Position numbers and translations under genes: made by a program. Source: Macrostomum lignano (lineage: Eukaryota). Taken from it: a DNA stretch of 64,000 nt. The stretch is taken from contig NIVC01002240.1 of the NCBI GenBank assembly GCA_002269645.1, positions 1-64,000 on the forward strand, given 5' to 3'. Shown here in pieces: positions 12,496 to 59,529 of the stretch. The stretch's first letter is position 1. Each line of letters opens with the position of its first letter. The notes below the pieces were generated by a model. That model searched no databases. It saw only the letters and a list, made by a program, of their open reading frames with translations, and was not told the origin of the DNA.

Positions 12496-15400
12496 ATGTA
12501 TACGATGTGCGTTGCAGATTCACTACAAGTCACCATCATGGATGATTTTTTTCGGCTGCTTGCCTCTATGTCAGCTGATAGTTCAGAGCTATCGGAAAAT
12601 ATTGTAAAACAGCACAGTAAAATGCTGGAAAAAATGAAATCAAAAATGGAGCGAATGGAAAACCGTCTGCTAAGGTCCAAAAGTCTTCCAAAAGAGGTTC
12701 GGAAGTTGATTGTAGCAGCGAGAATAGGGAATCATTCTAAGTGTTCAGGAATCTTAGTAAAAGGCACAGACGTCAATAGCAGAGGAGCCAGCAATGAAAC
12801 GGCTCTTTGTGCAGCAGCCTCTGGTGGACACTCAAACCTGTTAAATTTGCTTTTGGAGTATGGCGCGGATGTCAATGCTTCAGATGATGATGGGGACACT
12901 CCTTTGATGTATGCCGTCATGGCTGACGAACTAGGTTTCATCAAGTCCTTGGTAACCATCTGTGCGGATAAAGTTGATATCAATGCAAAGAACAAGTCTG
13001 GTAAGACAGGAATTGAGATGGCTTTTAAATCAGGAAAAGAGAAGATAGTGAAATTTCTCTCGCAAAGGAACGCAAAATTTGATTGCAAAGAAAAACAAAA
13101 AAGACGCTTTTTAAGTACGCGGAAGAAGGCAAAACGTATTTCATTAAGTTTTGGTTTGAACAACATTCTGCGCGTGAAACTGCAATAAACATGACTTGGA
13201 GGTCGCGTACCTTGGCCTTGGTTGCGGCTCTTAATGGCAAACTGAACGTTATAAAAGTCCTGTACGACAATGGTGCCAACTTGGATATCCCCGACGAGGA
13301 CGGCGACACGCCTTTATTTTGTGCCGCACAGAACGGATTCAGTGAAATTATTAGGTTCCTCGTGAGTAAAAATTGTGATGTGAATCACAGAAACAAGACG
13401 GGCAGAACTCCAATTTCGGCAGCCATAGGAAGTAGAAACTTTGAAATCGCTCGCTACTTCTACGATCACGGAGCCAGACTAACAGTTGTTGACATGGAAA
13501 AAATTTCCCTGTTGCTATTGTCAGTAGCCTCTGGTTCAACTGAGTTATTTAAATTTATGTGTGAGCATCTTCCAGAAGAAAGTCTGCAATTCGACGAAGT
13601 TACAACGGACGGCGAGACATGCCTTCTTGCGGCGTCCCAAACCAATAACGTTGAAATATTTAAGGCCATATTGGCGAAAAAAGTGGATTTCAACCATAGA
13701 AACAAACATGGCATGTCAGCAGCCTTGCGAGCAGCACATAATAATCAGCTTGAGATGGTGAAACTGCTGCAGGAGTTGGAGCCAACCTAGATCTACCAAA
13801 CAATGGCAACCAGACGGCGATTCTTTCTGCCGCCCAACAAGATAACATGCCTCTATTAAAACTTTTGGTAGATACTAATCGGTGCAACATTCACGTTCAA
13901 GACTACAATGGAGAGACACTTGTTTACCATGCAGTGAAAAATCGTGACATAGAAATGCTTTGCTTTCTGATCGAGTCCGGAGCCCCGATAGATGAAGCTG
14001 ACGTATGTGGCAACACTCCATTTATTGTTGCAGTTCATGATGACTGCATTGAAGCAGTACAAAGGTTGGTTGAAAAAGGCCGAGTAAATTTGAACAGGAG
14101 AAATGCCAAAGGACACACAGCAGTTCTTCTAGCAGTAAACAATGAGTCAGAAAATATGCTGAAATATCTCCTTGGCCTAGGTTGCGAAAGTGACATAAGT
14201 GACAGATCTGGCGATACGCCCCTTTTGCTTGCGGTGAAGAAAAAGAATTACAAACTGGCAAAGCTTCTTACAACACAAGAGAACAAGGAGTGCGATTCGA
14301 ACACTGCCGAAACGAAGACACGAAGTTCCTGCTTGCATGCATCAGCAAAAGCCACGAATCCTGCTTTTATCAATCTTCTAAGCCGAATAGGTGCGAATCT
14401 GGACATGGTGGATAGTGAGAGGAACACACCATTCGCAAAATCTGCTAAGAAGGATTCTGCTTACCTAACTATACTTTCCGCGAAAGGTGCAGATGTCAAC
14501 AGACGAAATTCTAGAGGTCAAAATGCAGCGCATTTGTGTACATTCCAAAAGATGAGCAATCTTGTAGTTCTTGAGGCCTTAGGCTGCTGTATTGATGTCG
14601 AAGATTTTGAAGGCAATGCTCCAATTCACCTGGCTGTAAAAAATAGAGAATTATCCAGCGTAGAATTCCTGATCGAACAGGGCGCTGAAATCGATTTTCC
14701 CAACCGAAAGGGCAATACGCCCATACATTTAGCCTGCAAAAAGGGTTCGAGCGTTATATGCGAAAGTCTTCTTGAGCAAAATGCCAAGTTGAAAACAATG
14801 AACAATCGCAAGCAGACCGAATTGATGTTGGCCTGCACGTCCAGAAATGAAAATATAGTTAAAATTCTTCTAATGCGTTACAGTAAGGAGGAAATTAATC
14901 TACAAGATATATTCAGAAGGACTGCATTGCATTATGCTGTGAAGTCGAAAAGCGAAAACGCCGCGAACCGCTTGATCGAAGCTGGTGCAGATGTAAACAT
15001 TCTGGATATTGATGGTCTCGCACCTATTCTACTTGCAGCTAAAACAAGCCAATGGAACGTTCTCAGTAGGGCTGTAGAAAATATCGATTCGAATTTATTG
15101 CTCAAATCAAAGAATGGAGAATCAATAGCACACTTTGCAGCCTCTAACTCAAGCATTGAGACTCTGAAAAAGCTCAAAGAGAAGCTAGTACCACTGACGG
15201 AACTAACTGAAGAAAGTGAGTCCTGTCTAACTCTGGCTGCCACTGGCGGATCAATAGAAGTTTGTGAGTTCCTCATTTCTGAAGGAAATCAAGTCAGTCA
15301 CTGTAACAGAAAAGGCGAGAATGCAATTTGCAAGGCTGCTAAAGCAAAAAATTCTGAGCTGTTTTTCCATCTGGCTACTTGCCACAGAGCGGATTTTCTG

Positions 15401-17913
15401 CTCAAGGATGAAAACGGCAACAGTAGCCTCTACTATTTTCTAGACGGCTCCGAGAGCCTTGATCATTCTGCCATATCAGAACTCCTTCTGGACGTTGATG
15501 AACAGAACCTAATCGATCTCAATTCACAGGGATTCGGACTCTGTCATATGGCAGCCAAGAAAGATAGCGTCAAGCTCCTTCGCGAGCTGCGGGACCGTGG
15601 ATGGGATCTGAGTAAAACTACAGCAAGTGGCGAAACTTGTATCACTCTTGCAGCGAAAACCAGCGGATCAAAGGCACTGAAGTTTCTACTTGAACTCTCT
15701 CGTAACAAGGACGCAATGGAACCAGAGCTTTCCAAAAGTAAACAAGAGCAAGAGAAGGCTTTTCGAATTTGTGCTGAACTAGGAAAGATAGAACTGACTG
15801 ACGAGTTATTCAGTCGTGGTGTTAATGTCAACGCCACCGACGAAGAGGGCAACACTGCTTTGATGATAGCTTGTCAGCACAAGCAGAATGACTTTGCCTT
15901 AAGCCTACTTTCCAGGGAATCGATACCTCGAGTTGATGTGGATGTAAAAAACCAAAACGGATTCTCTGCACTTCATTTTGCCAGCAAGAATCAGCTTACT
16001 GATTGCGTTGAAAAGCTGCTCAGCCTTGGAGCCAAAACTGACTCTGGTAATTCCGAAGGTTACACCTGTCTACATGAGGCCGTGAGGGGCCCTGACTCGA
16101 CTGACGTTGCCGAACTACTAATAGATTCTGGCTGTGATGTTAATCAGAAGACCTCTAGCGACGAGACAAGTTTATTGTTGGCACTTAAAAAAGGAAGTAA
16201 GAAATTGACTAAGTTTCTGATTAGTCGAGGAGCAAGAGTGGATGCAGAAAAAGTTCCAATATCTTTGGTGGTAAAAAAGTTCTTGTCGCAGGGCCGAAGA
16301 GAAATCATAACTTGGCTACTCAAGCTCGAACCAAAGCTGGATGTAAACAAAGTCGATGCTGATGGCCGTCATGTACTTTTTGACGTCATCGACCATGGAG
16401 CGGAAGAAATCCTGAGGCTTTTCATTTCTAGTGGAGCCGATATTGACTGCGAAGACAAACGTAGTGTCACACCATTTCTTCACGCTTTAGCAGTTGGCAG
16501 AGAAGATTTAGCAAAGGTATTGCTTGAACGAGGTTGCAACACTGAGAAACGAGCGGCCAATGGATTTGATTGTGTTTTGGCTGCTGTCTCTACGAGGCGT
16601 CTCTTCACTCTAAAATGGTTGTTTAATCATGTATCCGGACTAAACAGTCGTCCACAAGCAGAGATCAGAGGTAAAAATGCGTTGCACTTTTGCTGCCAAA
16701 TTGGACACCCACAGATGTTTAAACTGCTGCTTGAGAATGGCTTCGATCTGAACAAACAGTGCGATATTGGCTGGACTCCCATAGACTACGCGATAGCCGA
16801 AGGGCATCTGGCGATTATAAAGGCAGCAGATGCAATACAGAACAGGACCTTCTTGAGTAGATACGAACATCATGCAAACACGGCAAGTGATGTACCGTCA
16901 CCTTTCGCTAAAGCTGCTGCTAACGGCTATGAAAGCATATTCAAGTTTCTCCATTCAATCGGTGTTAACTTTGAGGGCATAGCCGATACAACCATTCCGT
17001 TTGCGTGTGGAAATGGACAGCAGCACATCATTAAATTTCTTCTTTCCGTTGGAGTTGATATCGAAGCGTATAAGAATCCAAAAAATGGCCAAACGGCTCT
17101 TCTTACAGCCATGTATTCGGGTGATTTGCACTTGATTAGCTTCCTTGTTGACAAAATTAGGTGTGACATTCGAGCTGTCTGTCATAACAGAAACACTGCT
17201 ATTCAAGGAGCAGTCACTACGAACCAAGAAAGAATCCTGAATTATCTCATTAGCAAGGGTGCACTAATTGACGAACCGGATGCCGAAGGAGACACTCCTG
17301 TTCTTGAAGCAGCACTTCTTGGACACCAGCGTATGCTAGACATCTTATTAGACCACAACTGCAACATAAAGAGGCTGAATAATCAGGCTCGAGGTGCTAT
17401 TCATATGGCTGTTATAAAAAATGACAACCCAGAAATGCTCCAGTTCCTAATCGATAAAGAAATCCCCGCGAACGGCAGGGATGAAAAAGGCAACACTGCC
17501 TGCATGATCGCCAGCTACCAAGGTCACCAAAAATCAGTAAAGCTCCTGCTTGAGCACGACCGAAGCCTCGGAAAAGAACGAAACGCAGACGGTTCAACGC
17601 CAGCACTGCTGGCCGCAATGAAAGGCAAGCATGAGGTTCTTCAAGTTCTGGCAGAAAATGATTGTTTGGAAGCTAATGACGTAGACAACGATGGCAGCAC
17701 AATCCTGATGATGGCCATTCAGTCCGGCTCTGTGCCAACAGTAAGAATGCTTCTGGAAACGGGTGACTGCAACACAACTGCTGTGAACAACAATGGGATT
17801 GGCGTTCAAACGCTGGCGACGCAGTGTCGCGATGAAGCGATGCTGGAGCTACTGAGGCAGTTCGGTATTGAAGGCCAACTGGCAGAGGCTGAGGCAACTG
17901 AGGCGCAGCAAAC
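12496..17913 (+). CDS. Giant ankyrin-repeat protein, main exon (~1800 aa, roughly 40-50 ANK repeats, short N-terminal coiled coil)
   Basis: Three track ORFs (12496-13188, 13083-13790, 13847-17917) join into one frame if one A is added to the A6 run at 13097-13102 (QKKTLFKY) and one G at ~13777 (ELGANLDLPN). Recurrent ANK consensus such as GDTPLMYAV, GNTPIHLAC, GFSALHFAS, GWTPIDYAI. Possible acceptor GTTGCAG near 12517. Donor AC|GTAAGA at 17914. Confidence 0.85.
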
Positions 17914-18002
17914 GTAAGATTTTTTATTTTTGCCAAACTGTACTATCAATTTCCCGCTGTTATTCTTATTCCGATAGTAATTTTACCTATCTTAATTTTA
18001 CC

Positions 18003-18358
18003 GGGGCCGTAGCCCAGCGGTAGCGCAGCTGCTCTGGTGTGCCAGCGACCCAGGCTCGATTCCAAGTGCAGTCACATTAATTTGGGGCTGAATTGGAATC
18101 TCGGCTTGGCTCTTCTCGTGCAATTAACGGCCTTGAGAGTCAACCCCCCAAGGCGCAGTGAAGTGTACATGCCTAACGATAAAATAAAGTTAGGGCCGCT
18201 GTACACTCCTGTGTGAGTGTGTGCCTGCGTACGTATCCGCGCGCTTGTATGCCTGCTCAGGGGAGTCGGCGGAATGGGCAGCAATGCCTCTCACCGGTTG
18301 TGTGCCTATGTCGTTTAAAGTGCGCCAGGGTGCACACAACCCCATGCCTGTAATAAAA
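18003..18358 (+). mobile_element. tRNA-derived SINE, copy 1
   Basis: Head GGGGCCGTAGCCCAGCGG (A-box-like) and GGCTCGATTCC (B-box-like), no acceptor-stem complement, AATAAAA tail. A near-identical copy lies on the minus strand at 26881-28130. Confidence 0.8.
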
Positions 18359-18599: not shown

Positions 18600-18835
18600 A
18601 CGGTAAAGCAATTAGCAATTGCGGTACAGCGGATGCGGTAAAGCGGATGCGGTAAAGCGGATGCAGTGCGCACTGTGGCAAAGCGGATTGTGCCTAGCAC
18701 AATTCTTTTAAAGATATATATATGCTGCGGATGGACCATAGACAAAAAGCTCAAAGCGGCGGCAGAGGCGGCGGTGCCTAGCACAATCTTACTAGAGATA
18801 TATATATTAACCCGGTAGCTATAGTATACGGCTGG
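18600..18835. repeat. Cluster of short direct repeats, palindromes and (AT)n upstream of the Rep cassette
   Basis: GCGGTAAAGCGGAT repeats; perfect palindrome CAGTGCGCACTG at 18664-18675; hairpin ATTGTGC-CTA-GCACAAT at 18687-18703, partly repeated at 18774-18787; each hairpin copy is followed shortly by GATATATATAT. Confidence 0.7.
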
Positions 18836-18948: not shown

Positions 18949-19542
18949 ATGCAAAGTCCTCCATGGCCCGGCGATAGCCAATACGCAACCGCGGACGAGA
19001 TGGCGGCCGTCCTCCTGGAAGCCTGCGAGCAGGTTGACGCTGCTGAAGCCGCGGCCGCCGCCGCCGCCGCGGCCGCGGCCCCATCGACTGTTCCAAAGCG
19101 GCAAGAAGACGCGGAGCGGGCTGCACTAGAGGCCGACCTCTTCACGCTGGAGGCGGCGGATGAGCAGGCTGATTGCGTCATCACTGGGGTCTTCGTACCA
19201 GACAGCGACGAAGACGACGAGGCAAGTGGTCGCCTGCCATTATTCAAGACTGAACAGCAGAGTCAGCAGCAGCATCATCAGGAGACAGCGGCTGCAGTCG
19301 CTGCAAAGCCGGAACTAAAACGACAGCCGAGAATCGGGTCAGCTGGCATCAAGCCGGCGATAACGAGTCGCTGCTTCGTATCCCGAAGTGGCACGGCCGC
19401 GTCGCTAAGCGCCGCTAAGCAGCAACAAGGGCCGACACCGCCAAAGCGCCATTGTCAACGCCCGATAACGGCGGCGAACGCGCTGCCATCGTCGCCCTGC
19501 AGTCGCAGCAGTTCGATCCTATCGCCAGGTAGGAGTCGTTGA
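18949..19542 (+). CDS. Orphan ORF A of the intronic cassette (acidic, poly-Ala/Gln N-half; basic Ser/Pro C-half)
   Basis: 197 aa ATG-initiated ORF preceded by AATATAAAAG. GC-rich coding-like composition. Possible donor CAG|GTAGGA near 19529. No recognisable domain. Confidence 0.45.
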   Translation: MQSPPWPGDSQYATADEMAAVLLEACEQVDAAEAAAAAAAAAAAPSTVPKRQEDAERAALEADLFTLEAADEQADCVITGVFVPDSDEDDEASGRLPLFKTEQQSQQQHHQETAAAVAAKPELKRQPRIGSAGIKPAITSRCFVSRSGTAASLSAAKQQQGPTPPKRHCQRPITAANALPSSPCSRSSSILSPGRSR

Positions 19543-19621
19543 ATGCTGCTGCTCAGTTGCTGAGCATTCGTTGTTGACCATCGATCCTTACACTTTTAGT
19601 TCATAGCTCATTACCCATATT

Positions 19622-20074
19622 GTGAAATTATTTGTCATTGTTCACAACAACCACCACCAATCGTCCACTTTGACGACAGGCTGTTCTATCCCGTCGGACA
19701 CTCGGTCTTCGCAGCCGCCGCCGCCGCCGCCGCCGCCGCCGCCTCCGCCGCCACCTTATTACTGCGGCGGATATACCGACGAATGGAGCGCCGCGGCCGC
19801 CTCCTACGAGACGGCTGCTGCTCACCAGCATCATCAGCAGCCGCAGCCGACACGGGACACCACGTCCAGGCTGCTCGTGCCTCGCATTCTGCTGCACCCC
19901 GAGGATGCCGTAGACGCCTCCGTTGCAGGCAGCAATGGACAGCTGGCGAATCGGCGGGCCTACCGCGGCATGTCTGTGCTCAGGATAGCCTACGTGAAGC
20001 AACCTGGCGCGCTCAAGATGATGTTAATGTCAGCCTGGAGTGAATGGGCGACTCAACTGGCCATCAGTGAGTAG
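19622..20074 (+). CDS. Orphan ORF B of the intronic cassette (poly-Pro in one frame; an overlapping poly-Ala frame is also open)
   Basis: 150 aa open frame. Donor-like GTGAGT at 20067 and acceptor-like TGTGCAG at 20157. True frame and start are ambiguous. Confidence 0.35.
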   Translation: MKLFVIVHNNHHQSSTLTTGCSIPSDTRSSQPPPPPPPPPPPPPPYYCGGYTDEWSAAAASYETAAAHQHHQQPQPTRDTTSRLLVPRILLHPEDAVDASVAGSNGQLANRRAYRGMSVLRIAYVKQPGALKMMLMSAWSEWATQLAISE

Positions 20075-20428
20075 CGTGGGGTTGTTGCCCTTTCCTATTT
20101 ATCTACTTACTTTATTAAGCATTGCTGTTCTTTTCTTTTTATATCATTTCTGTGCAGCTCCTATGCGCGATCGACAGCGCTGATTTGCCAAACTATTGCC
20201 ATAGACTATATGAATATCACAATTAATGATATATCAATGCCATTTATTGAATTGCCACGACTGCAACACTGCCATAATCGTATAATCCCTCTTCCCCCAC
20301 AATCCTCATCTGTCGCGCGCCTCCGCCCCCTCTCTCTCTCTCTGCATCATCCCATTTCTGAATAATATTGCGCCGTCTTCTTCTTCTGCATCTAATTTCT
20401 CAACTCGACGATCAACACACAAAAAACA

Positions 20429-21811
20429 ATGTCAAAAAATAGGCGTCACTAAGAATGAGTTCGAGCCATCCAAGACGCACATTGTCGATCCATATGCGCC
20501 CCTGACCGACGATGTTAGTCGGGAGACGTCAAGCATTCACGCATTTGTCCGCACCGCCGTCCTCCACACTAATTGCGACTTGGTCGGGCAGCTGCGTCCG
20601 ATTTTCGCGTCAGGCCGCGACGCGGACACCTTTGCTGTGCGCCGCTGGACGCAAGTCGAGATCAGGAGCGTCCGCAGCGTCGAAGCCGAGCTGCGCCGGA
20701 TAACTGCGCTTGACCCGGTATGCTGCACAATTAATATCGATGACAGCTGCTTGTCGCGCACCATCGTACTCTATCGTTGGGCGATGTCGTATCCGGTCGA
20801 GGCGGTGCAGCCGGATCTTGACGACCCCGTGCTAAACGCGGGCAATCCGATGTTGACAAAGCAGTCTTTAGACTACTTCAACAACATTCAACTTCTGCGT
20901 CGGATGAGGGCAGAGGCGCTCTCGGGTTCGTCAGGCTCGGCGGCCAGCAGCAGAAGGCACTGTGCGGTGTCTGCGAGCGGCCGCCAGTGTCGTTCCGTAG
21001 TAGCGCCGCCGCCGCCGCCGCCGCCACTTTCGCCGCCTGTTCCGGTCCTTCTTCTTCGTCGGAGGACGCGTGTCGCCGCCGCAGCAACGGCGGCAGCCAG
21101 AGGGTGTCGCAGCAGCAGCCGCAGCCGCCACCGCCGCTGCCAGACGAACTTGTGGTGACGCACCTGGGCAGCGGTCTGTGCGACGTACAGATAGCCGTGT
21201 GCCGCGCCATGCAGAGGGAGATGCCGCCGCCCACAATATATTTGTGGGGGCCTTCCGGAGTTGGCAAGACGGCCATGGTGCACCTGCACTTTGGCAGGGA
21301 GCCTGTGTTCGTGCCGGACTTGACAACAAGTTTTCCTTTCGACGGGCTGCGCTTTAACTTGCATAAGTGCATTTTTGTCGATGAATTCGATGCCAGCCGT
21401 CCAATTCCGGGTCAACTGCTGCTACTGTTCAACCGTGATAAGTTCACGATCAATGAGAAATATCAAAGCCACAAAAAAGAGCCATGGCCACACGCCATTG
21501 TTGTGGCGGGCCACGCGGCCCCAGGGCAGATCAGTCGGGACTTCTTGCGCAGGATGACTGCAGTCGTGCACATCCCGCATAATCTGTTCGACTGCGACGG
21601 GTGCGACGCCAGTCAAGGTCGCAGCGGCAGAGGACGCCAAGATGCGGCGTCGCAGGCGGCGAAGAAAAATGTGCAGCAGCAGCAGCAGCAGCAGATGCCG
21701 CCGCCGCCACCGCCACCGCCGCAGTAGCAGGAGCGGCTGTTTGCCGACGATGCCGCCGCCGTCGCCGAAGAAGAAGAAGAAGAAGAACGCGAAGCAGCCT
21801 ACTATTGTTGA
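20429..21811 (+). CDS. CRESS-DNA-virus-like Rep: degenerate HUH endonuclease domain plus SF3 helicase; endogenous, with two frameshifts and one in-frame TAG
   Basis: Helicase frame is open 20822-21727: IYLWGPSGVGKT (Walker A, 21248-21271), PFDGL..CIFVDEF (Walker B, 21371-21388), FTINEKY (B'), IVVAGH (motif C-like), DFLRR (Arg-finger-like, 21542-21553). Upstream frame: IGVTKN, SSIHAFV (20535-20549), VEIRSVRSVEAELRRITALDP, DDPVL. TAG at 21725 lies within a CAG run and the frame continues to TGA at 21811. Confidence 0.7.
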
Positions 21812-22385: not shown

Positions 22386-25035
<2,650 letters not shown>

Positions 25036-30182: not shown

Positions 30183-33100
30183 TCAGTTGTTCTCATCGTC
30201 TGAGCTGTCCAGACTGATAACTATTGGCTCTGAGGGTCTTGGGGCAGCAGGGGCAGGCGGAGGAGGTTGGGGCTGCTGCGGCTGCTGAGCATTCGAAGGC
30301 GAGGCCGCCGCGTTCGCTGCAGCCGCCGGCGTTGCCGCCGCTACCGCCGCCCCATCGCCGTCCGTCAACTCATCGTCGCTCTCCGTCAGATCAAAATGAT
30401 TGACAGTGGCGGCTGCCGCCCTTCCATTCTGAGTCTCCGATCCAGCAGCAGCCGTGGCAGATGCCGAAGCAGCTGACGGATCCGACGCAGTCGACTTGGC
30501 CGCGGCGCCGCTGTCGGCCGCTGGATGGTCAGCCGAGTCGCGATCGACGGCTGCCGACCAGCTGCCGTCTGGCAGGAACTGCAGCCGCTCCAGCTCGGAG
30601 CTGGTCGGGCTGGACAGAACCTCCTGGCGAGCGAGTTGGGAATGCGTGCAGAATTATCTGACTTCAACTCGCTTTCAATCGTTTCTTCTGATACTCTAAT
30701 GCCATCTGGGAGATGCTTGCCATCTGGGAGATGCTTGCCATCTGGGGGATGCTTGCCATCTGGGGGATGCTTGCTAGGTGGGAGAAGCTTGCTATCTGGG
30801 AGATGCTTGCCATCTGGGGATGCTTGCCATCTGGGGGATGCTTGCTAGGTGGGAGAAGCTTGCTATCTGGGAGATGCTTGCCATCTGGGGGATGCTTGCC
30901 ATCTGGGGATGCTTGCTAGGTGGGGGAAGCTTGCTAGGTGGGGGAAGCTTGCTATCTGGGGGATGCTTGCTAGGTGGGAGAAGCTTGCTATCTGGGAGAT
31001 GCTTGCCATCTGGGGGATGCTTGCCATCTGGGGGATGCTTGCTAGGTGGGGGAAGCTTGCTATCTGGGGGATGCTTGCTATCTGGGAGATGCTTGCCATC
31101 TGGGGGATGCTTGCCAGGTGGGAGAAGCTTGCTATCTGGGAGATGCTTGCCATCTGGGGATGCTTGCCATCTGGGGATGCTTGCTAGGTGGGGGAAGCTT
31201 GCTATCTGGGAGATGCTTGCCATCTGGGGGATGCTTGCCATCTGGGGGATGCTTGCTAGGTGGGAGAAGCTTGCTATCTGGGAGATGCTTGCCATCTGGG
31301 GGATGCTTGCCATCTGGGGGATGCTTGCTAGGTGGGGGAAGCTTGCTATCTGGGAGATGCTTGCCATCTGGGGATGCTTGCTAGGTGGGGGATGCTTGCT
31401 AGGTGGGGGAAGCTTGCCATCTTGGGGATGCTTGCTATCTGGGGGATGCTTGCCATCTGGGGGATGCTTGCTAGGTGGGGGAAGCTTGCCATCTGGGGGA
31501 TGCTTGCTATCTGGGGGATGCTTGCCATCTGGGGGATGCTTGCTATTTGGGGATCAATGCTTGAATGCTGTCTGGGGATGCTTGCTGTCTTGGGATGTTT
31601 TTTTTTAGAGGGAATGTCTTGTTTTTTATGAAGGCTTTATTTCGCTGTCTATTTGTTATTTGTAAAGAACAAAGATTCTATCCAGATGCGCCCCATCGGG
31701 GGGCGAAGATTGCTTGTCTGATACTCTAATTGAGACTAAATTGGATTCATAGATTGAGTCTTCATCGGATGACAAAGACCTCATTCGTCTACGTCTGCCA
31801 ACTGATTTTTTTATTGTAGATTCCGTACCTTCAGCCTTCTTGTCAATGACGACTCGGACTTGAATTTATAGGACTACAGAAAGGAGCGATTACCTAGTTA
31901 CATAGACCAAGAAGCCTCATTGCAGTCAGTGCAGGTAACACAGGTAAAATAAGATAGAAGTGACTCTTAGACGACTCTAAAACAACCAGATGTCAAGGCA
32001 CAAGTCGCCAAAAGTCGATCGCATAAGAGTCAATTCGACTCTGAAACGACTCTGAGGCGTTCTTTCTGAATATAGCTGTCGCTCTAGTCGTTAAAAAGCA
32101 ACAAGAGTCGCCTCAGGGTCGCTAGTGAGTTATTTGAAATGACTCTTTTATCGATTCTTGTCACGGTAACAAGTTCAACGGGGTGCCTTCAACTCTTTTC
32201 AGTGCTGTTCGTGTCTACTGAGAAACTCTTGAACTTTCTATCCAAAGTGTTGCAACTATCGCTGATATAACTTACCTGAAAATAGGCATCAATATAGAGC
32301 TGGCCATAGGGCGACGGCTGGTCGCAGAACGGGCACTTCCACACGGGCTTCTTGGCATTCATAGCCAAGTAGGAGTAGGCATCGAAGCACTGCACATGAG
32401 AGCAGGCCTCCGATCGCATTGGCGTGCTCATGCGCATCTTGCCCAGCGGGCACTTCAACGAAGCCACCAGCTCAGTGACGGCCAGCTCGCAGTCGGACGG
32501 GCTCAGCTTCTCACGGATCATTGTTCGAGTGAAATCGGCCGCGCGAATGCCGCGATCCCGAATCCGATCGATCAGGTCAATCGGGGTCAGGGCGCGGACT
32601 AGGCAGATCTTTTGCGGGGTTTTATTGTTTTGTATATGAAATATGAATGTAATAACTATTATATACGATAATAGCAACATCAAGAAGAACAGGGCCGGGT
32701 GAGGGGTCACTGCCCTCTTACAGACATTTGATGAGATTATACTATAGTTTAACTACAGGGAAGCCTTCCATGAGAGGTCAATGGAGGTCATTTGCCCCCC
32801 CCACTCCGTAGTGAAAATGGTGATCGTGCTGCCTAGAAAGAAAAGATTAAGATCAGTGGAATTTTCGCCCACCCCAACGACAAAGTATGCTTGCCTAGTT
32901 GCCTATGGTTGCCTACTAACCCGCAGTTTTGTTTTCAGTTCGTATATGCAAATTAGTTTATTATTTAGTAGGCAAGGGGGATGGGCTATTCAGCTGCGTA
33001 CTAACCACAGCCTACTGTGCTTAACTTGCAGCGCTAATGTCCAATGTGGAGGGTGGCTACGGACAATGACTAGCAAGAGTTTTATCGAAAGATTTGAAAT

Positions 33101-36100
33101 TCGAAATAATGACTCACCTGTACACAATAACTAGCAGTAGAATCGTAATTATATCCCATCTGGAGTAGATTTGGCGTCTTAGGACTCAGCCGGCAAAGCG
33201 GTGTTAAATTAATTGGCCGGCCGGGCCGCTGCGGCTCAGCGTTGGGCTTGTTGGTGGGGATGACGGCAGGCAGGGTGACCGGCTGCTTGTTCACTCGGCA
33301 GGAGACCCCAGTTGGGAACACGTCCGACTGGGGACCGGGCTGGATCTTCAGGCAGCGCAACTGCACCTGCGGTATTGATTTTGTTCTATGGTAAATTACG
33401 ATTATTAATGATGTTCAGTCATACAGATGAGTCACCCGAGGCCAAAACAATCAGACTATCATGTTGGTAATTCAGCCCTGTCAATTCATCTCTTACCAAT
33501 TCGTGTTGGTAATTCAGCCCTGTCAATTCATCTCTTACCAATTCGTGTTGGTAATTCAGCCCTGTCAATTCATCTCTTACCAATTCATGTTGGTAATTCA
33601 GCCCTGTCAATTCATCTCTTACCAATTCATGTTGGTAATTCAGCCCTGTCAATTCATCTCTTACCAATTCATGTTGGTAATTCAGCCCTGTCAGTTCAAC
33701 TCTTACCAATTCATGTTGGTAATTCAGCCCTGTCAGTTCAACTCTTACCAATTCATGTTGGTAATTCAGCCCTGTCAGTTCAACTCTTACCAATTCGTGT
33801 TGGTTATTCAGCCCTGTCAGTTCAACTCTTACCGATTCATGTTGGTAATTCAACCCTGTCAGTTCAACTCTTACCAATTCATGTTGGTAATTCAGCCCTG
33901 TCAGTTCAACTCTTACCGATTCATGTTGGTAATTCAACCCTGTCAGTTCAACTCTTACCAATTCATGTTGGTAATTCAGCCCTGTCAGTTAAACTCTTAC
34001 CAATTAATGTTGGTAATTCAGCCCTGTCAGTTAAACTCTTACCAATTCATGTTGGTAATTCAGCCCTGTCAGTTAAACTCTTACCAATTCATGTTGGTAA
34101 TTCAGCCCTGTCAGTTAAACTCTTACCAATTCATGTTGGTAATTCAGCCCTGTCAATTCATCTCTTACCAATTAATGTTGGTAATTCAGCCCTGTCAGTT
34201 CAACTCTTACCAATTCATGTTGGTAATTCAGCCCTGTCAATTCATCTCTTACCAATTAATGTTGGTAATTCAGCCCTGTCAGTTCAACTCTTACCAATTC
34301 ATGTTGGTAATTCAGCCCTGTCAATTCATCTCTTACCAATTCATGTTGGTAATTCAGCCCTGTCAGTTCAACTCTTACCAATTCATGTTGGTAATTCAGC
34401 CTGTCAATTCAACTCTTACCAATACATGTTGGTAATTCAGCCCTGTCAGTTCAACTCTTACCAATTCATGTTGGTAATTCAGCCCTGTCAGTTCAACTCT
34501 TACCAATTCATGTTGGTAATTCAGCCTGTCAATTCAACTCTTACCAATTCATGTTGGTAATTCAGCCTGTCAATTCAACTCTTACCAATTCATGTTGGTA
34601 ATTCAGCCCTGTCAGTTCAACTCTTACCAATTCATGTTGGTAATTCAGCCCTGTCAGTTCAACTCTTACCAATTCATGTTGGTAATTCAGCCCTGTCAGT
34701 TCAACTCTTACCAATTCATGTTGGTAATTCAGCCTGTCAATTCAACTCTTACCAATTCATGTTGGTAATTCAGCCTGTCAATTCAACTCTTACCAATTCA
34801 TGTTGGTAATTCAGCCCTGTCAGTTCAACTCTTACCAATTCATGTTGGTAATTCAGCCCTGTCAGTTCAACTCTTACCAATTCATGTTGGTAATTCAGCC
34901 CTGTCAGTTCAACTCTTACCAATTCATGTTGGTAATTCAGCCCTGTCAATTCATATCTCACCAATTCATGATGGTAATCTGGGTGAATAGAGCTGGGTGA
35001 ACTGAAGCAATGCAGAGTTGTGTCTTGCTCAAGGACACAAATTGTTCCGAGTGAGTCAAGAATCGAACCCCTGACATTCAAGTCGTGAGTTCGACGCTCT
35101 GACCACTAGGCTACAAACTAGGCTTTCAACTCTTACCAATTCATCTTATTAACATTCTTAATGAGCATTAACGCAACTTACCTGCACAGGATACTCAATT
35201 CGATTAGTGCTGTCATTTATATACCGATTCATAGTGACCTGGTTGACCTGTTGCAGAGTTAAGTAGAATACGCAGTGCTGCTCTTGGGCTCGCTGGGTTA
35301 AGTTGGTTATCTGGGGGGGTATATTGGTACAGGAGGGGTGCATTTTATTATTTAAAACCTAAAATTTCGAAATGCCTATGCTTTTAATAGAAAGCCTAGA
35401 AGGATTAGGTGTAAAACTATCCTCTCTCCTCTTCTCTTCTCTCCTCCCCCCCCCCCTATCTCTCTCCTCTCTGCCCTCCTCTGACCTGCAGCTAGGTTCT
35501 CTGTCTGGTCCTTGAAGTAAAAAGTTACTCAACTGAGCTATGAACAAACTTGTTATGTTCTAATAAACATTTTCTTCACACCCTACTTACAGTAGAAGTA
35601 AAAGAATATTGCAAGTATATAACTAATTGTTTAGCCTGCCTAAATAGAGCCTAAAAGCCTGTCTCCAACATGCTAAATTAAAGAAAAATATCTGCAGTAG
35701 GCCCCAGTCTTTACCTGCAGACTGGTTGGCGGCATTATTGTCTCCAAGACGTCGTAGAATGGCATCAAATTGGCATCGGCGTTGTTGGCCTGCACTGGTG
35801 GATGATGCGGCAGGTTGCTGGGCGCCGGCGGCAGCGGCAGGCCGTTGGCGGTCAGCTGGCCCAACATGGCGGCGGCTGGCGGCCGCTGCTGGACTGGAGC
35901 GGCAACTACAGAGGATTCGGGGTTGGGTGTGATTGCCAGGTATGAGATTATTTCAGCCTGGGACGTCCGGAGTAGGTATAGGGTGCTTAGTTCCATACAG
36001 GAACAGGTGAGGAAGGGGTATTCTATTCAGTAAAATGACAAGAACAGGTGTGGAAGGGGTATTCTATTCAGTAAAAGGACAAGAACAGGTGTGGAAGGGG

Positions 36101-45959: not shown

Positions 45960-46974
45960 CTAGAAGTTACCGTTACTGTTCGTTGTGGCCCATTCGATTT
46001 CATTGATAGTGAAATCCATTTCCAAGTCATCTATCGTGAAGACTTGCTGTCCTTGCTGCTCACTTTTCGATGTAGATATGATGGAATTTGCATATCGTTG
46101 CATCGCTTGTGTCGGCTGTTTTGGTGTGTACTTAGCGTTGCGTAGCCTGTAGCTAGCTATCGTTTTCCGAGGCGCCTCATGGCTCATGCCTTGTTGCTGC
46201 CGATTTTTGATATTGCTGCCATGGCTTTTGTGGTTTCCGATTGTTGAATGGCTGTCTCGGTTTGTAATACTTGTCGTCCGATGAGGACAATTAATTTGAT
46301 AATGTCCTTCTTGTCCGCAGTAGTAGCATCTGGCTTGTGCTTGTTCGTTTCTTCTTTTTTGTTCGGCGATAGCAGCTGTTTGATGTTGCATCAGCTTGTT
46401 TAATTGCTGCGTCAACTTCTGCACGTCAGTGTTGCCTGTTGTCATTAATGGGGCACTGGCTTCCCCATTGCATTCCGCACCGCAGAAGTTCTTCTTCGGT
46501 CTCGATGTTTTCTCGCAAAAGTCTGTCCCGGAGTGACAGCTGTGCATTGTTTATTACATGCAGGATCAGATTTTGTTCACGATCCATCAATCGCTGTCGC
46601 TCTCTAGCGGCTAATTCTGCCGCACCCAAAGGTGGTTGGTTCGCAGCTGACAGTTGGCTGATGCAGTGCCTTAATTATCTGACAGACGTCGTCCACACAA
46701 AGGTTAGAAAGGATTCCGTTGCTTGCATTCTTCTGTTGTGCAGCTTGTGCAGTAGCACCGATCTGTTTGTGCCACAACGGTTGAAGTGCGCGCGCAGTTG
46801 AATGATTAATGCCGGGTAATTTTGCTGTGTTGCCGCATCCAGTTTGCCGTAAATTTCTCGCGCAGTGCCTTGGAGGAGAGGTGGCAACAGTTGAGCCTTT
46901 TCTGGATTTTGTAGGTTGTATTCCCTACATACCAAGTCGAAATGATCCACGAAAGTGTTAAAATCTTTTTCCAT
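45960..46974 (-). pseudogene. Retrotransposon Gag relic (Ty3/Gypsy-like) with CCHC zinc knuckle
   Basis: FNTFVDHFDLVCREYNL..KAQLLPPLLQGTAREIY (capsid-like) and RCYYCGQEGHYQINCP (CX2CX4HX4C). Internal stop at 46675 and a frameshift near 46440. No pol follows. Confidence 0.8.
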
Positions 46975-50642: not shown

Positions 50643-51419
50643 TCCAAAGTTGTAAATGCAAACTTACAAGTGAAATTTTTGCTTTGTTCCTTCTTGAACC
50701 CAGTATAATTTGTAAAAAAACTGTTGCATGCAGTACTCTGATGTTTTAAGCTGGACCTTGGCTTAAAAATGACAGCTTTCCAAAGACTAGGTCAACAAAA
50801 ATATGAAAAATGATATTTAAACATTGTCTACAATTAATAATCTAGACAGGTCTAAGAAGAACTACTAATATGCATTTAAAATGGAACTATACCAACAATA
50901 TTGGCTTAAGAGTGCCTGAATGCACCAGTTTTTGCCCCCCCCCCCACCCACATGCTCATACTTATACTTCCTAGCTAACCAAGCATCTAAGCAAGCTAAG
51001 ATCAAAGCAAGCTGTACTTTCCCACGGCTTCAAGAGTGCCTAATTAATTAATATTCGGTATGTTAATTTCTACTTGTTGGTGACTGGGAACTTTTGCATG
51101 CAGCTGGTACTGGGTGAATTTCAGTTCTTGCACTGCAGGTGCTTGCGATTTGTAATTCGGTTCGCGCTGTTTATAATAAGCAGTCTGGTTGGTGAGACAA
51201 CAGGAGAACATTTCTATAATACCAGTTTTTTATGACCTTGCGCTGATCGTTGAAAGTTATTTTGGATTTGGTTTTGGGGCAGCGAATTTAATGAAGTTAA
51301 AAGAATGCGTATTGAAAATGAATAATGGGAGAATTGAGCAAGAATTGTAGTATGTTGGGAATTTTAGAGATCAGATAATCTTTTAGGTTTTTTGAATGAG
51401 AGAATGAGAACCAGATGAG

Positions 51420-51895
51420 AATGTTGGCGAGATGTGAATGTCGGCGAGATGAGAATGTCGGCGAGATGAGAATGTCGGCGAGATGAGAATGTCGGCGAGA
51501 TGAGAATGTCGGCGAGATGAGAATGTCGGCGAGATGAGAATGTCGGCGAGATGAGAATGTCGGCGAGATGAGAATGTCGGCGAGATGAGAATGTCGGCGA
51601 GATGAGAATGTCGGCGAGATGAGAATGTCGGCGAGATGAGAATGTCGGCGAGATGAGAATGTCGGCGAGATGAGAATGTCGGCGAGATGAGAATGTCGGC
51701 GAGATGAGAATGTCGGCGAGATGAGAATGTCGGCGAGATGAGAATGTCGGCGAGATGAGAATGTCGGCGAGATGAGAATGTCGGCAAGATGAGAATGTCG
51801 GCGAGATAAGATTGTCAGCGAAATGAGTCGGCGAGATGAGGATCGGTGACATGAAAATGTCGGCGAGATGAGATTCCGCGAGCTGCGACGTGCCC
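51420..51895. repeat. 17 bp homogeneous tandem array (ATGAGAATGTCGGCGAG) ending in a unique ...CGACGTGCCC terminus
   Basis: About 22-24 almost perfect units that decay towards 51895. Confidence 0.92.
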
Positions 51896-53199
51896 AAGAA
51901 TCTTGGCTTTTTCTAGTACTTTTGCATGCTCGAGGTTCTTTCACGCGTTACTGAATATCCAACCAATTGTTTAATTAACTTCTTCTTGTGACAGCGTCAG
52001 GAAATAGCTGTTTGCTGAGCTCGTAAATTCTGACAGGCTGATATGGTTTTCCGTTTCACTGGAATTAGTGGAAATGAATTGAATCACTTCCTTTTTAAAA
52101 GTACAGAAGTCTGGCACCTATCTCGTATATGCATGGTTCGCGCTATGCCTTGCTATTCCTATTCGTACGGGTTCCATTGAACCCTACATACATGTATCTT
52201 TCTAATCGATTTCCTTATCGTTCTGGTTCTGGCAATATACGAATAGGTCGTAGATAGCTCTTATTTCAACTCCCCTGCCACGTTACTTGAGAGCTTGCGA
52301 TATGTTTGTACATATAGAGCAAGTTGAACTTGTATGGTATACAGTTTTTACTCAATGAGCAACTGAAATCAGCTACTTTTGTATTTTCCATTAATTTCTA
52401 TTTTTTCCAACTCTAGAACTTGGAAGCTTCTTCAGAACTAAGTAAAAGTTCCCCTTGTCAGTCTATTTCGCGAGCGTGTACTTGCTGTATATTGTGTTTG
52501 TGGCCCTTGGACGGCCGTATCGCGGGGTTTACAGTAAAAACCAGTTCACTCACTGGCTGGGGCAAGTCTAAAAATAGATGGCCTACTAAGTCCTTCAAGT
52601 GACCTCAGCACGCGTCTAGCAGGAGGGGAAGGCATGACAATATAAAAAAGCTGTGCAGCATTTGGGTAAAGCATAACACAGGTAGAGAAACTGGTTAGTT
52701 CTAGCCTCACTATACTCGTTTGCTTCTCTTAATTATTTTTCTAGCCTGCCTCAGTGGCTCTATAAAAGACAATACTAAACCGTGCGTGCGTCAGGGAGCA
52801 AGCAAAGCAGTCTGCAAAACAAGCCGTGACCCCAGCTAAGGTTTGAAACTCAACGCATACTTTGCAAAGGTAATAAGGCTTCTAAATTTTACTTTGATTT
52901 TGTATTAATTCCATACTCGCATCATCTACGAAGTACTGGCGATTTTTGAATCCGGATTTTCTCCGGTTCTAGACGCGTTCTTTTTCCCACGATCGATGTC
53001 CCTCAGTCTCCTGCTCTTTCCTGTATAGATGAACAGGAGACGAGAAACTGAGTACAGCGTACTGTACTGTACACTGTACACTCGGCTAATGTGTGATTGC
53101 GGCAGGAAGTACCGCTCTCGGTCGAGAATTTTCATCCTCTTACCCCTTCCCTCTCTCTCTCTTCCCCCCAGTCTACCCCTAGGGCCTCCTGTATTCCCG

Positions 53200-53350: not shown

Positions 53351-53896
53351 GTAAGTGCGAGAATAGAAATTAAATTACATTGTGTGCTTGAAATGAAAAT
53401 ACGGTAGCTTTTACGTAGCTTTTACGGTAGCTTAGCTTCTTACATTTGTTATTAAAATGCACTCAGTATAGGAATTGAATTATTAGCCCAAACTTACTAT
53501 ATTTCTTTGCCCAACGCAAAAAACACATTGAGTGAGCAAATGCTTACCAAATGTGGGCCGAAAGTGTAGGCAAAGGTCCTAGAAAGGGTTGTGCATTGGA
53601 AAGAATAACAGACACCTTCGCAAATTTAACAGCAGACGTCTGATTCATCTACTTATACTAGAAATGTGAACATTTTAGTACTATAAAATCAGTTTGCGGA
53701 TTTATTCAGTAAATTCTAGCCCGGTTAGTGAACTGATATTCAATCCGAGATGTAATGAAATATTTTACCTGTCCCAATCAAGTTTTAGTGAGTTTAAGTG
53801 AATTCGAATAATCAAATATTATTATCAAATAGGCAGGATGATTTTTATTACTTTCTTACCAAATTTTACCGACCCAATCAAAGCCAGGCAGCCCAA

Positions 53897-56800
53897 ATGT
53901 CCGACGACGAGTCCCAGCAGATTGACCACTCCTTCCACTCGCTTCTGGAGTCTAGCAATGAGAAACGCGTCTTCAAGCGCATCCTGGTGGCTAACCGGGG
54001 CGAAATTGCCATGCGCATCTACCGGGCCTGCAGCGAGTTGGGCATCCGGTCCATCGGTGTCTACAGCGAGGTGGACACGATGCACATGCACCGCACCATG
54101 GCCGATGAGAGCTACCTGATTGGCAAGGGCCTGCCGCCTGTGCAAGCCTATCTAAACATACCGACTATAGTGCAGGTGGCCAAGGAGACTGGCGCGGACG
54201 CCGTGCATCCGGGCTACGGATTCCTGTCGGAGAGTGCGGAGTTTGCGCAGGCCTGCAACGACGCTGGAATAGTGTTCATCGGGCCAAAGCCTGAGACTGT
54301 GGCTCTACTTGGAGACAAGGTTTGTGCGCTTTTTTGTTCGACTAACACAGGCTATTCCAAGTTAGTTTTTTATGAAAAGCATTAGGATTCGATCCGCCAC
54401 TCTTCACTGAAAACTAACTCAGGTGAAAGCCCGTGCCGCTTCCGTCGCCGCCGGTGTCCCCGTGGTACCCGGCTCGCCCGGGCCAATCCAAAGCGCTAAG
54501 GAGGTGACCGATTTCTGCGCCGAGCATGGCTTCCCGGTCATCCTTAAGGCGGCCTTCGGCGGTGGCGGCCGCGGCATGCGAATTGTACGCCGCGCCGAGG
54601 ATCTCGTTGAATCGTTCGAGCGGGCCACTTCTGAGGCGAAGGCGGCGTTCGGAAACGGGTCCATGTTTGTGGAGCGCTACGTGGAGAATGCAAGGCACAT
54701 TGAGGTGAGCATATGCCATATTAGCTGTATGAAGTTTTATCCTACAGACGGAGGGTTGATTGACTCTCCTTCAACGCATTATGAAATCTTTAGGGTTTAG
54801 CCGTTTTACTGACGTGTGATTTGCTGGTTTGACAAGTGACATTCTAAATCTTCTCTGCAGATACAAATCCTAGCTGACAGCAAGGGAAATGTTGTTCACC
54901 TGCACGAGCGCGACTGTTCGGTTCAACGTCGCCACCAGAAGGTAGTGGAAATTGCTCCTGCTCCGTACTTGGACCCTGCGGTGGCGGCGGCCATTGCGGG
55001 CGACGCTGTGAAGCTCATGCGCCACGTAGGCTATCAGAATGCCGGCACCGTGGAGTTCCTCTATGAGCAGCACACTGGACAGCACTTCTTCATGGAGGTT
55101 AACCCGCGAATCCAGGTCGAGCACACTGTCACTGAGGAGGTCACTGGAGTCGATATTGTGCGCAAGCAGGTGAGATTAACACAGTCGCAGAGCATCTGAA
55201 GTTAAACCTAAAGCTGATACATTACCATTTTCTTCCTTGTTCAGTTTCTTTCTGGTCGCTTGACAATATCTACACATAACGTTTGCTGTGATAAGCAGTC
55301 CAAACCGTGACAGCTTACATTGGCAAGCCGATTCCCTCTGGCACTAACCATTGCTTTTTATTTCACTCCAACCCCCTGTCCTTTCTAGATACGCATAGCC
55401 GAGGGCTACACGCTGGCTCAGCAGGACATCAGTCAGGAATCAATCAAAGTCCACGGCTTCGCTATGCAGTGCCGCATCACCACCGAGGATCCGCACCGGG
55501 GCTTCCAGCCCGACTCTGGCCGCCTGGAAGACTTCCGCCCCGGCCTGGGCATCGGCATCCGCCTGGACTCGGCCAGCGCCTACGCTGGCGCCATCATCTC
55601 GCCCTACTACGACAGCCTGCTGTGCAAGGTGATCGTCAAGGCAAGCAACTTCCACGACTGCGTGGTGAAAACCTACCGCTGCCTTGGAGAGTTTCGCATA
55701 CGCGGCGTCAAGACCAACATACCGTTTTTGCGAAACCTGCTGAACTGCTCGGAATTCCTTTCTGGCCCAGTCAGCACCGGCTTTCTGGACCGCAATCCGC
55801 AGCTGGTAAAGCAGAAGACATCTAAAAACAAGGCCCAGCGCCTGCTGTTCTTTATTGGTGAGTGCAGGGGATTAATGAGTCATGTAAAATGTGTCTATAG
55901 GCAATGGGTATCACCACATAAACGCGCTACTACTAAATTTCATCCACAGCCGAGACGCTGGTGAATGGATCAACAACTCCGATAAGTAACAAGGATATCC
56001 GCATTCCCGAAGTGAATCCACCGGTGCCGGATATTGACTATTGTAAGTAATGTATTTTTCTATTTCCCTTACTTCTGAATTCAAAATGCAAAGATACGAG
56101 CCTAAATGTCGGGAAGCACAGTGGTGCAGTTTTGGTCACTTGTACTCATCTTTTTGGCTTTTTGCCCTTCTGCCAAATAAAATTTTCAGTACTTAGTCGC
56201 CAGCTTAGTATGGGGATTTTAGTATATGGATTTTTATACGTAAGTTGTTTTAATTGAACAGAATTTTATGATATCCCGATAAAAAAGACTCGTATGTTTC
56301 CAACTACTTCAGCCTCCAGCTGCCCCCCCGGTTGGCGGCAGATTTTGCTTAAAGAGGGACCTGAGGCCTTTGCCAAGGCCATCCTGCGTCATCCGACTGT
56401 TCTCCTCACGGACACCACGATGCGCGATGCCCACCAGTCGCTACTGGCTACTCGAGTTCGAACTCACGACCTCATCAAGATTGCTCCCTTTGTAGCCAGA
56501 CGCATGGAGAATCTACTTTCACTCGAGTGCTGGGGCGGCGCCACCTTTGATGTGGCCATGCGCTTTCTGCACGAGTGCCCGTGGGATCGACTTGAAGAGC
56601 TGCGGAAGAGGATCCCTAATATCCCGTTTCAGATGCTGCTGCGCGGCGCGAACGCTGTTGGCTACACCAACTACCCGGACAACGTGGTGTACAAGTTCTG
56701 CGAGGAGGCTGTCAAGTCCGGCATGGACATATTTCGCGTTTTTGATTGTCTTAACTACGTACCAAATATGCTTGTTGGTATGGACGCTGTGCGCAAAGCC

Positions 56801-59520: not shown

Positions 59521-59529
59521 CTGCTCGCC

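Follow-up and report, generated by a model that had tools for sequence, protein, structure and literature searches.

The 64,000-nt stretch of DNA analysed here (contig NIVC01002240.1, positions 1 to 64,000 of the forward strand; hereafter the window) contains at positions 18949-21727, between an ankyrin-repeat gene and a pyruvate carboxylase gene, a predicted gene whose product resembles the replication protein (Rep) of small single-stranded DNA (ssDNA) viruses. Reps of the circular Rep-encoding ssDNA (CRESS) viruses carry an N-terminal HUH nuclease with motif I, the HUH motif and YxxK, fused to a helicase of superfamily 3 (SF3), whereas the RepHel protein of Helitrons uses an SF1/PIF1 helicase. 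A preliminary description of the interval 20429-21811 had read it as a CRESS-type Rep with an apparently dead nuclease, and all strings it quoted are present in the window as described: GPSGVGKT, FDGL..IFVDEF, FTINEKY, IVVAGH, FLRR, CGVC and CDGC all lie in the frame of one open reading frame (ORF; 20987-21727), IGVTKN, SSIHAFV and VRSVEAELRRITALD lie in a second frame, open across the 5' half of the interval, and runs of poly-Ala, poly-Pro, poly-Gln and poly-Glu occur in the gene region. With a probability of roughly two in three, we consider the gene to be a chromosomal, spliced host gene, which descends from a CRESS-type Rep and belongs to a nuclease-dead, co-opted family.

The two Rep-like halves and their relatives

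Each piece of the window was used as a query as it stands, on its own side of the frame change that separates the two halves. HMMER, run exhaustively with the 160-aa ATPase core (21140-21619) against 1.84 billion representative proteins, returned 24 matches at E<=1e-3, the top four of which (1.9e-23 to 1.8e-11) are short 'hypothetical' proteins. The best of them, P0001 (PAA62424.1, BOX15_Mlig013629g1; E 1.9e-23), is a hypothetical protein of 252 aa from a 220-kb contig of Macrostomum lignano, which shares 42-44% identity with the window and aligns to both window frames; its locus is L002 below. The matches between 3e-5 and 1e-3 include P0011 and P0014, both of which pass the Pfam thresholds for Viral_Rep (PF02407) and RNA_helicase (PF00910), and a second group among the matches contains clear HUH and Tyr-x-x-Lys strings (P0013, P0023, P0024). 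A search seeded with this intact group led to about 20 proteins on Logan contigs of 2.1-2.8 kb. Two sets are compared in the following: the live family, 21 aligned Reps with intact motifs (P0023, P0025-P0041, P0044) on such contigs, and the dead family of six members (the window, L007, P0019, L004, L008 and the M. lignano locus L002), five of which cover motif II. A word-indexed protein search found nothing with the ATPase core and only P0019 with the family alignment, a metagenome locus scan gave four weak loci with the P-loop pattern only, and between the window and the loci of its relatives there is no nucleotide similarity. No paper describing the dead family was found.

The ATPase ORF of the window aligns to a profile of the 21 live Reps from before Walker A to the Arg finger (hhalign, 98.7% probability, E 3.5e-16, 116 columns). 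The window and its relatives all have Walker A, Walker B, the B' Lys and the Arg finger, and to this extent the SF3 part is as intact as the preliminary description had it; motif C is not, as Gly-His stands in place of Ser-Asn and the Asn, invariant in the live relatives, is His. The AlphaFold model of the core (predicted local distance difference test score, pLDDT, 82.5) was compared with the PDB using Foldseek and matches the fold of the solved SF3 helicases, namely papillomavirus E1, Rep40/68 of adeno-associated virus 2 (AAV2), the Rep ATPase of porcine circovirus 2 (PCV2; 8xms, 7lar) and the large T antigen of simian virus 40 (SV40), with E values of 7e-6 to 1e-4; against PCV2 Rep the template modelling (TM) score by target length is 0.64 and the root mean square deviation 3.2 over 121 columns. 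The window core differs from these helicases in that identity is 10-20%, the Asn of motif C is missing and RuvB scores as well as or better than they do. Among predicted viral structures (BFVD), CRESS Reps are the best match (2e-8), with parvoviral NS1 below them. An SF1/Pif1 helicase as in Helitron RepHel was not found, the fold matches of the core being SF3 and AAA+ and the sole PIF1-type match insignificant (E 0.47, P-loop only); the window pieces gave no match to Parvo_NS1 (PF01057), and phmmer of both against PDB sequences returned insignificant P-loop matches only.

RuvB, a cellular AAA+ protein, is the top PDB match in Foldseek (1.8e-6, with the 160-aa core lacking the lid region), the best Pfam models for the ATPase piece are generic AAA models, and the profile of the dead family matches the P-loops of midasin, p97 and dynein in the PDB at 1e-9 to 1e-5. 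One might therefore think of a host AAA+ or other P-loop gene without viral ancestry, the likeness to Reps being convergent or limited to the shared P-loop. We regard this as very improbable, because the midasin, p97 and dynein matches are confined to the stretch from Walker A to Walker B, whereas the match to the live Reps runs in order from nuclease motifs II and III over the linker to motif C and the Arg finger. Moreover, the direct matches include Reps with both PF02407 and PF00910, and the CRESS Reps at the top of BFVD have a better E value than any host ATPase in the PDB. The Rep origin proposed in the preliminary description is supported, and on the sequence and fold comparisons the ATPase half is a Rep-type SF3 P-loop domain.

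Sequence comparisons also connect the upstream piece to Rep nucleases. The segment 20445-20960 matches P0019 (BLASTP, 5e-8), an ORF on contig L004 (7e-6) and, over 157 residues, the uninterrupted ORF of L007 (tblastn, 1.5e-11), which the ATPase frame matches at 2e-31; P0019 itself, an ORF with both domains on an ENA metagenome contig, aligns over its full length to the live Rep P0023 (7e-8). Compared with the 21 live Reps by hhalign, the upstream piece gives E 1.7e-4 for the window alone, 3.3e-8 (95%) as a three-sequence profile and 2.7e-6 as a flatworm-type profile. The alignments run from the strand of motif II through motif III and the conserved Trp and Asp-Pro into the linker helix, and the order nuclease, linker, helicase is colinear with intact Reps, as expected of the Rep-derived protein of the preliminary description. 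They place Ser-Ile-His under His-x-His and Arg/Ala under Tyr/Lys, in agreement with the earlier placement by eye: in the window the first His is replaced by Ser, the Tyr by Arg and the Lys by Ala, and the second His is kept. Going by these alignments, the upstream frame is homologous to the second half of the Rep nuclease domain and the linker.

The two families differ consistently at the residues needed for nicking. All 21 live Reps have both His of motif II as well as the Tyr and Lys of motif III, and their ATPase shows no variation at the Walker A Lys, at one Walker B Glu, at the B' Lys, at the motif C Asn or at the Arg finger. In the dead family the Tyr and the Lys are found in none of six members and the first His in none of five, the second His being left in two of five (window, P0019). 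The scaffold of the domain is preserved, with the Trp in six of six and Asp-Pro in most. In the ATPase no relative has lost Walker A, Walker B, the B' Lys or the Arg finger, and all carry another residue in place of the motif C Asn: His in the window, L007 and P0001, Val or Cys elsewhere. Only the dead family contains three Cys pairs, a CxxC in the linker, a C-x6-C before Walker A and a CxxC or CxxxC after the core. The window shares five of the six Cys columns and is offset by one residue of spacing in the sixth; the CGVC and CDGC seen earlier are the first and third of these pairs and hence conserved family features. The preliminary description had taken the selective loss of nicking residues, with the P-loop motifs kept, as a sign of domestication rather than random decay, and had asked whether the loss recurs in relatives. 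It does so family-wide for Tyr, Lys and the first His, including in an uninterrupted ORF. Since all members of the dead family show the same loss, it is old and not a result of decay in the window copy; it would predate the divergence of the known members.

Among these members, L007 (JGI metagenome contig Ga0450804_2604286) is the most informative, as it encodes both domains in one uninterrupted ORF of 444 aa. It is colinear with the window in both domains (30% and 43% identity) and, over 215 columns between motif III and motif C, with the live Reps (E 2e-16). At motif III it has Arg for Tyr as the window does (RR-I/V-T), the Cys pairs are common to both, and its upstream ORF carries the N-terminal motif described below. 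Unlike the window, it has both domains in one frame, lacks the intron seen in the window and in M. lignano, has no His at motif II and ends 4 residues past the last Cys pair. L002 resembles the window in the three Cys pairs, the Gly-His at motif C and the lost nuclease residues. Its nuclease-like piece is so diverged that it scored neither by BLASTP nor by hhalign when used alone, and its assignment therefore follows from its location and from L007. A second subgroup of the dead family (L008; P0005-P0007, P0008, P0015) has the ATPase split right after Walker B: in L008 (ENA ERZ23491819 scaffold_4480) the family pieces lie about 1 kb and 0.2 kb apart and spread over about 2.2 kb, and each of P0005-P0007 stops directly behind Walker B with 'K-V-S', as if at a splice donor, which suggests a conserved intron inside the viral-derived ATPase of this subgroup. 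L008 and the single-ORF member P0019 come from the same metagenome.

The live family is the nearest group with all catalytic residues, and its colinearity with the window extends from motif II as far as the Arg finger. It differs from the window in its intact HUH, Tyr, Lys and motif C Asn, in lacking Cys pairs, in sequence (20-29% identity) and in its location on small AT-rich contigs with all ORFs on one strand. Six of the 21 proteins match Gemini_AL1 (PF00799; best 2.9e-4) and 19 match DUF5906, and against the PDB the family profile finds the helicases of AAV Rep40/68 and parvoviral NS1 (5e-8) and, weakly, a geminivirus Rep nuclease. A scan of IMG/VR returned no relative, and the ORFs other than Rep on the live-family contigs gave no Pfam match; the family may represent an undescribed lineage of small ssDNA viruses. 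On two of its contigs, L005 (2402 bp, SRR28250151) and L013 (2347 bp, SRR14381426), every ORF has the same orientation. If L005 were closed into a circle of 2402 nt, the ORFs truncated at its two ends would be continuous in frame; no terminal overlap was found.

Exon structure and genomic surroundings

The preliminary description had proposed a stand-alone gene of about 460 aa. The interval 20429-21811 is instead predicted to be the last exon of a larger, three-exon spliced gene starting at 18949 (Table 1), whose N-terminal motif and exon order recur in relatives; a stand-alone gene would need a start codon in the frame of the nuclease remnant, and there is none within the interval. The conserved motif of exon 1 consists of a Trp, followed by an acidic Asp/Ser/Glu patch and then by a hydrophobic-Ala stretch. 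When the N-terminal 40-50 residues of the upstream ORFs were compared, the window and L007 gave z 7.5 (0 of 1000 shuffles), the window and L002 z 3.8 (2 of 500 shuffles), and L002 and L007 z 4.9. The motif was not found in the live Reps, and nothing similar to the upstream ORFs turned up among the ORFs other than Rep on the live-family contigs.

Table 1. Position and content of the predicted gene, its parts and other features of the window
Feature	Position	Strand	Content and evidence
Whole gene model, three exons	18949..21727	+	ORFs, exon model and upstream ORF common to relatives; one frame change in last exon, no internal stop in homologous stretches
Exon 1	18949..19528	+	ATG, N-terminal motif, then poly-Ala/Gln low complexity; GC content at third codon positions (GC3) 0.64
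Predicted intron 1	19529..19679	+	GT-AG, 151 nt, phase 1, AT-rich; GC 0.42 vs 0.63-0.65 in flanking exons
Exon 2	19680..20066	+	Poly-Pro/Gln, then homology to the L007 ORF segment that directly precedes the nuclease-derived region
Predicted intron 2	20067..20442	+	GTGAGT donor, 376 nt, phase 1, GC 0.41, weak acceptor
Nuclease-derived remnant	20520..20830	+	Motif II position, motif III position, conserved Trp...Asp-Pro
First Cys pair (CxxC), linker	20963..20974	+	Cys columns common to L007, P0001, P0019; also P0005, P0007
SF3-type P-loop ATPase core (predicted)	21140..21620	+	Walker A, Walker B, B' Lys, motif C position, Arg finger
Second Cys pair (C-x6-C), before Walker A	21179-21202	+	Common to the dead family
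Walker A	21248-21271	+	Within the ATPase core
C-terminal Cys pair (CxxC), after ATPase core	21593..21604	+	CxxC or CxxxC in L007, P0001, P0002, P0003, P0008, P0015
Ankyrin-repeat region	12496-17917	+	Uninterrupted 1356-aa ORF (13847-17917) and two upstream ankyrin ORFs
Long tandem arrays	23678-24688, 30778-31608, 33427-34560, 51297-51944, 59008-59667		GA-rich 12/22-nt units and several periods of ~30-60 nt; long spurious ORFs on both strands
CCHC zinc-knuckle ORF	45960-46547	-	195 aa, PF00098 6.7e-5
Pyruvate carboxylase gene	53798-58243	+	Multi-exon, at least 5 GT-AG introns of ~91-270 nt; yardstick for intron size and codon composition

Exon 2 ends with ATC-A|GTGAGTAG in the same phase as the M. 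lignano locus, where a long low-complexity ORF, carrying the same N-terminal motif, runs into a GTGAGTAG donor of a phase-1 intron after an ATC codon, and the nuclease-like region follows in frame after 78 nt. The spliced reading of this locus is seamless against the continuous L007 ORF (z 8.7, 0 of 1000 shuffles). In the window, exons 2 and 3 joined as they stand contain no stop and are colinear with the same ORF, with z 18.9 overall and z 6.8 (0 of 1000 shuffles) for the segment across the junction. The last 60 residues of exon 2 show no significant similarity to the corresponding exon end in M. lignano. As exon 2 alone gave no alignment to the live-Rep profile, survival of the first half of the nuclease domain is not claimed.

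L002 (8454-10759 of contig NIVC01001938.1) differs from the window in its neighbours, genes of the COG7 and EME1/MUS81 types, in the position of a single frame change, which affects another part of the gene, and in being annotated only as the 252-aa hypothetical protein. The annotation takes in only what lies downstream of the frame change and omits both the nuclease-like exon and the upstream exon of about 350 aa.

In composition the gene resembles the pyruvate carboxylase gene of the window. GC3 is 0.67-0.71 in the Rep-derived pieces and 0.68-0.73 in the pyruvate carboxylase gene, and the GC content of the introns is 0.41-0.42 in the predicted and 0.40-0.42 in the pyruvate carboxylase introns, which agrees with a long residence in the host. 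The window as a whole is, as judged from its sequence, eukaryotic.

Instead of lying on a small circular genome beside a capsid gene and a stem-loop origin, as in a CRESS virus, the gene is chromosomal, with host genes on both sides. We see only a very slight chance that it is, as the preliminary description had suggested, a helper or non-autonomous Rep, belonging either to a mobile element or to an episomal virus co-assembled with the host. The small contigs of the live relatives would suit such a Rep; on the other side, the window holds a single copy of the gene in 64 kb and M. lignano has only one annotated copy in the records, neither terminal inverted nor long direct repeats flank the gene, no capsid-like ORF was found around it, no origin-like nonanucleotide occurs within 17.9-23.5 kb, and the gene is embedded between host genes, with host codon usage and predicted introns. 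A mobile element was rejected for lack of terminal repeats around the gene, and an episome for lack of a capsid-like ORF and of an origin motif nearby.

Other parts of the window deserve brief mention. The ankyrin-repeat region has a GC3 of 0.42, unlike the neighbouring genes (0.64-0.73), and may belong to a gene evolving differently or recently acquired. In the spacer upstream of the Rep-like gene, a stretch at about 18003-18075 (+) is tRNA-like, with strings resembling box A and box B, and may be a fragment of a tRNA-derived short interspersed nuclear element; ARAGORN made no tRNA call there, and tRNA and Rfam scans of the window were empty. A 47-nt direct repeat is present twice at 18677-18807 (+), each copy ending in (TA)n, about 150-270 nt upstream of the ATG and just after a 14-nt tandem repeat at 18620-18664; these could be promoter-region repeats. 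The zinc-knuckle ORF on the minus strand is probably the Gag remnant of a retroelement.

The frame change and the state of the window copy

As assembled, the nuclease remnant and the ATPase half of the window lie in different frames, so that the copy is unable to encode the full protein. Guided by the uninterrupted L007 ORF, one finds two window matches in two frames with no stop inside either, that is, one frame change. The preliminary description had repaired two single-base slips, of which only one is needed under the three-exon model. A short intron at this point was considered and rejected, since the gap between the homologous residues of the two frames is far shorter than the introns of the window (91-376 nt). 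The earlier reading of a TAG as CAG can also be dispensed with, given that the relatives end between 4 and about 70 residues past the last Cys pair, with tails that are non-homologous and often acidic; the stop at 21727 may be the natural end of the ORF. An acidic stretch continues in frame past this stop.

Selection was examined through the ratio of nonsynonymous to synonymous differences per site (pN/pS), which amounts to 0.39-0.46 for the ATPase and 0.62-0.70 for the nuclease remnant; pS is saturated in every available pair, and pN/pS therefore overstates the corresponding ratio of substitution rates (dN/dS). The values show long-term constraint on both domains, stronger on the ATPase, over a span that excludes the terminal branch. 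The codon-position GC pattern is kept in both frames of the window copy, and at ATPase positions conserved in the family (at least four of five relatives agreeing) the window retains the family residue in 34 of 37 cases, compared with 36 of 39 in the intact L007 and 35 of 39 in P0001.

The window copy might be an ordinary fossil endogenous viral element, that is, one Rep insertion decaying neutrally, in which the loss of His, Tyr and Lys is random. Such an origin would account for the frame change, for Pfam thresholds that are not reached and for a nuclease remnant only about 30% identical to its relatives. It is improbable in our view, since the catalytic positions are lost in all six members, while the Trp, Asp-Pro, Walker A and B, Arg finger and Cys pairs are kept, one relative is an uninterrupted ORF of 444 aa, pN/pS is below 1 although pS is saturated, and host-like GC3, introns and the N-terminal extension are common to several loci.

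More weight has to be given to the explanation that this is a young pseudogene of a domesticated family, in which the frame change is real and the copy now dead. We hold this to be unlikely, but considerably less so than the neutral fossil. It would fit the one frame change between the domains as assembled, the lack of a start codon in the remnant frame inside the interval, the weak acceptor of intron 2 and the frame change in the M. lignano copy, which indicates that breaks occur in the family. These points are opposed by the absence of internal stops in the homologous stretches, by a share of conserved ATPase positions equal to that of an intact copy and by the preserved codon-position GC pattern in both frames; a single-base assembly error, furthermore, would look the same. 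Because the window copy bears no other decay, its break would be either an assembly error or very recent, and what is seen is either a very young pseudogene or an assembly error.

Several observations weigh against our preferred reading, a spliced host gene of a co-opted Rep family, and should be set out together. The sole phase-compatible acceptor for exon 3, which would start at 20443, has 25% pyrimidines, and a stronger acceptor about 90 nt into intron 2 would end the upstream ORF after a few codons. In Pfam the window pieces stay below threshold for PF00910 (13.4 bits against a cut-off of 21.5) and give no match to a nuclease family (PF02407, PF00799). Motif I, recognised earlier in the string IGVTKN, does not stand: no profile alignment, whether with the window piece, the three-sequence, the exon 2 or the flatworm-type profile, detected it or reaches upstream of motif II, and the string sits at the predicted splice acceptor. 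The model of the nuclease remnant (pLDDT 71.6) comprises the C-terminal half of the domain only, and Foldseek found no PDB match at E<1. On the question whether the N-terminal frame has an HUH fold, structure comparison thus gave nothing and sequence profiles link the half-domain to Rep nucleases; the missing fold match is not taken as a negative, as the first strands of the domain are absent from the model. The AAA+ matches of the family profile mentioned above belong here as well. Finally, the window and the M. lignano copies contain exactly one frame change each, in different parts of the gene, which has the look of early pseudogenes, and with dS saturated the ratios are silent on selection along the terminal branch.

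Possible function and meaning

Under the reading of a co-opted host gene, the ancestor would have been the Rep of a small CRESS-type ssDNA virus with a geminivirus-like HUH nuclease and an SF3 helicase. The nuclease active site, with both His, the Tyr and the Lys, would have been lost before the known members diverged, and the fold-supporting residues of the remnant, the linker and the P-loop core would have been kept under purifying selection, with three Cys pairs, introns and a disordered N-terminal extension added. Such a protein should no longer be able to nick or join DNA, but could still bind nucleotide via Walker A, Walker B and the Arg finger, and it would probably have retained assembly through the linker and oligomerisation region of the Rep. 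As the Asn of motif C is replaced, its mode of action may be that of a slow or switch-like NTPase and not of a processive helicase. Through the Cys pairs it would gain zinc-stabilised surfaces. Its function could be one of two: it might interfere with incoming Reps of the parent virus lineage, either co-assembling with them or occupying the origin, or it might have taken on a new role in the host associated with DNA or chromatin.

Captured Reps of this kind have been described in large DNA viruses. The apvRep of avipoxviruses, derived from Draupnirviridae, and U94 of human herpesvirus 6 (HHV-6), a parvoviral Rep, have an inactivated HUH nuclease, often without the catalytic Tyr, and are under purifying selection with Walker A and B conserved and the other helicase motifs partly so; their function is unknown (PMC10193959). 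They share with the dead family the inactivated nuclease motifs, the retained Walker A and B and the constraint. They differ from it in that their captors are large DNA viruses and not an animal genome, in the donor lineages and in the lack of introns, of a disordered N-terminal extension and of added Cys pairs, and the protein searches made here returned no sequence match to either. Further reports describe Rep genes of CRESS viruses integrated into the chromosomes of protists and invertebrates, and use these endogenous viral elements as host-virus links or genomic fossils (for example PMC7493932, PMC4231630).

We tentatively picture, at somewhat less than even chances, an old and maintained family of flatworm-type animals and of eukaryotes represented only by metagenomes, in which a nuclease-stripped Rep, provided with Cys pairs, introns and an extension, serves the host; in its most attractive form it would be a decoy that joins the assemblies of, or competes at the origin with, the Reps of a parent virus lineage that still circulates and is represented here by the 2.1-2.8 kb contigs. 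The kind of protein, a captured and nuclease-inactivated Rep, is already known; new here is an animal gene family of that kind, with introns in the viral-derived region, added Cys pairs, a conserved non-viral N-terminal exon and a viral sister group with intact motifs. Several 'hypothetical proteins', one of them from the model flatworm M. lignano, can thereby be named, and an otherwise hostless group of small ssDNA-virus-like contigs gains a host link. The family would further provide a second, independent setting for asking what a nuclease-dead Rep is good for.

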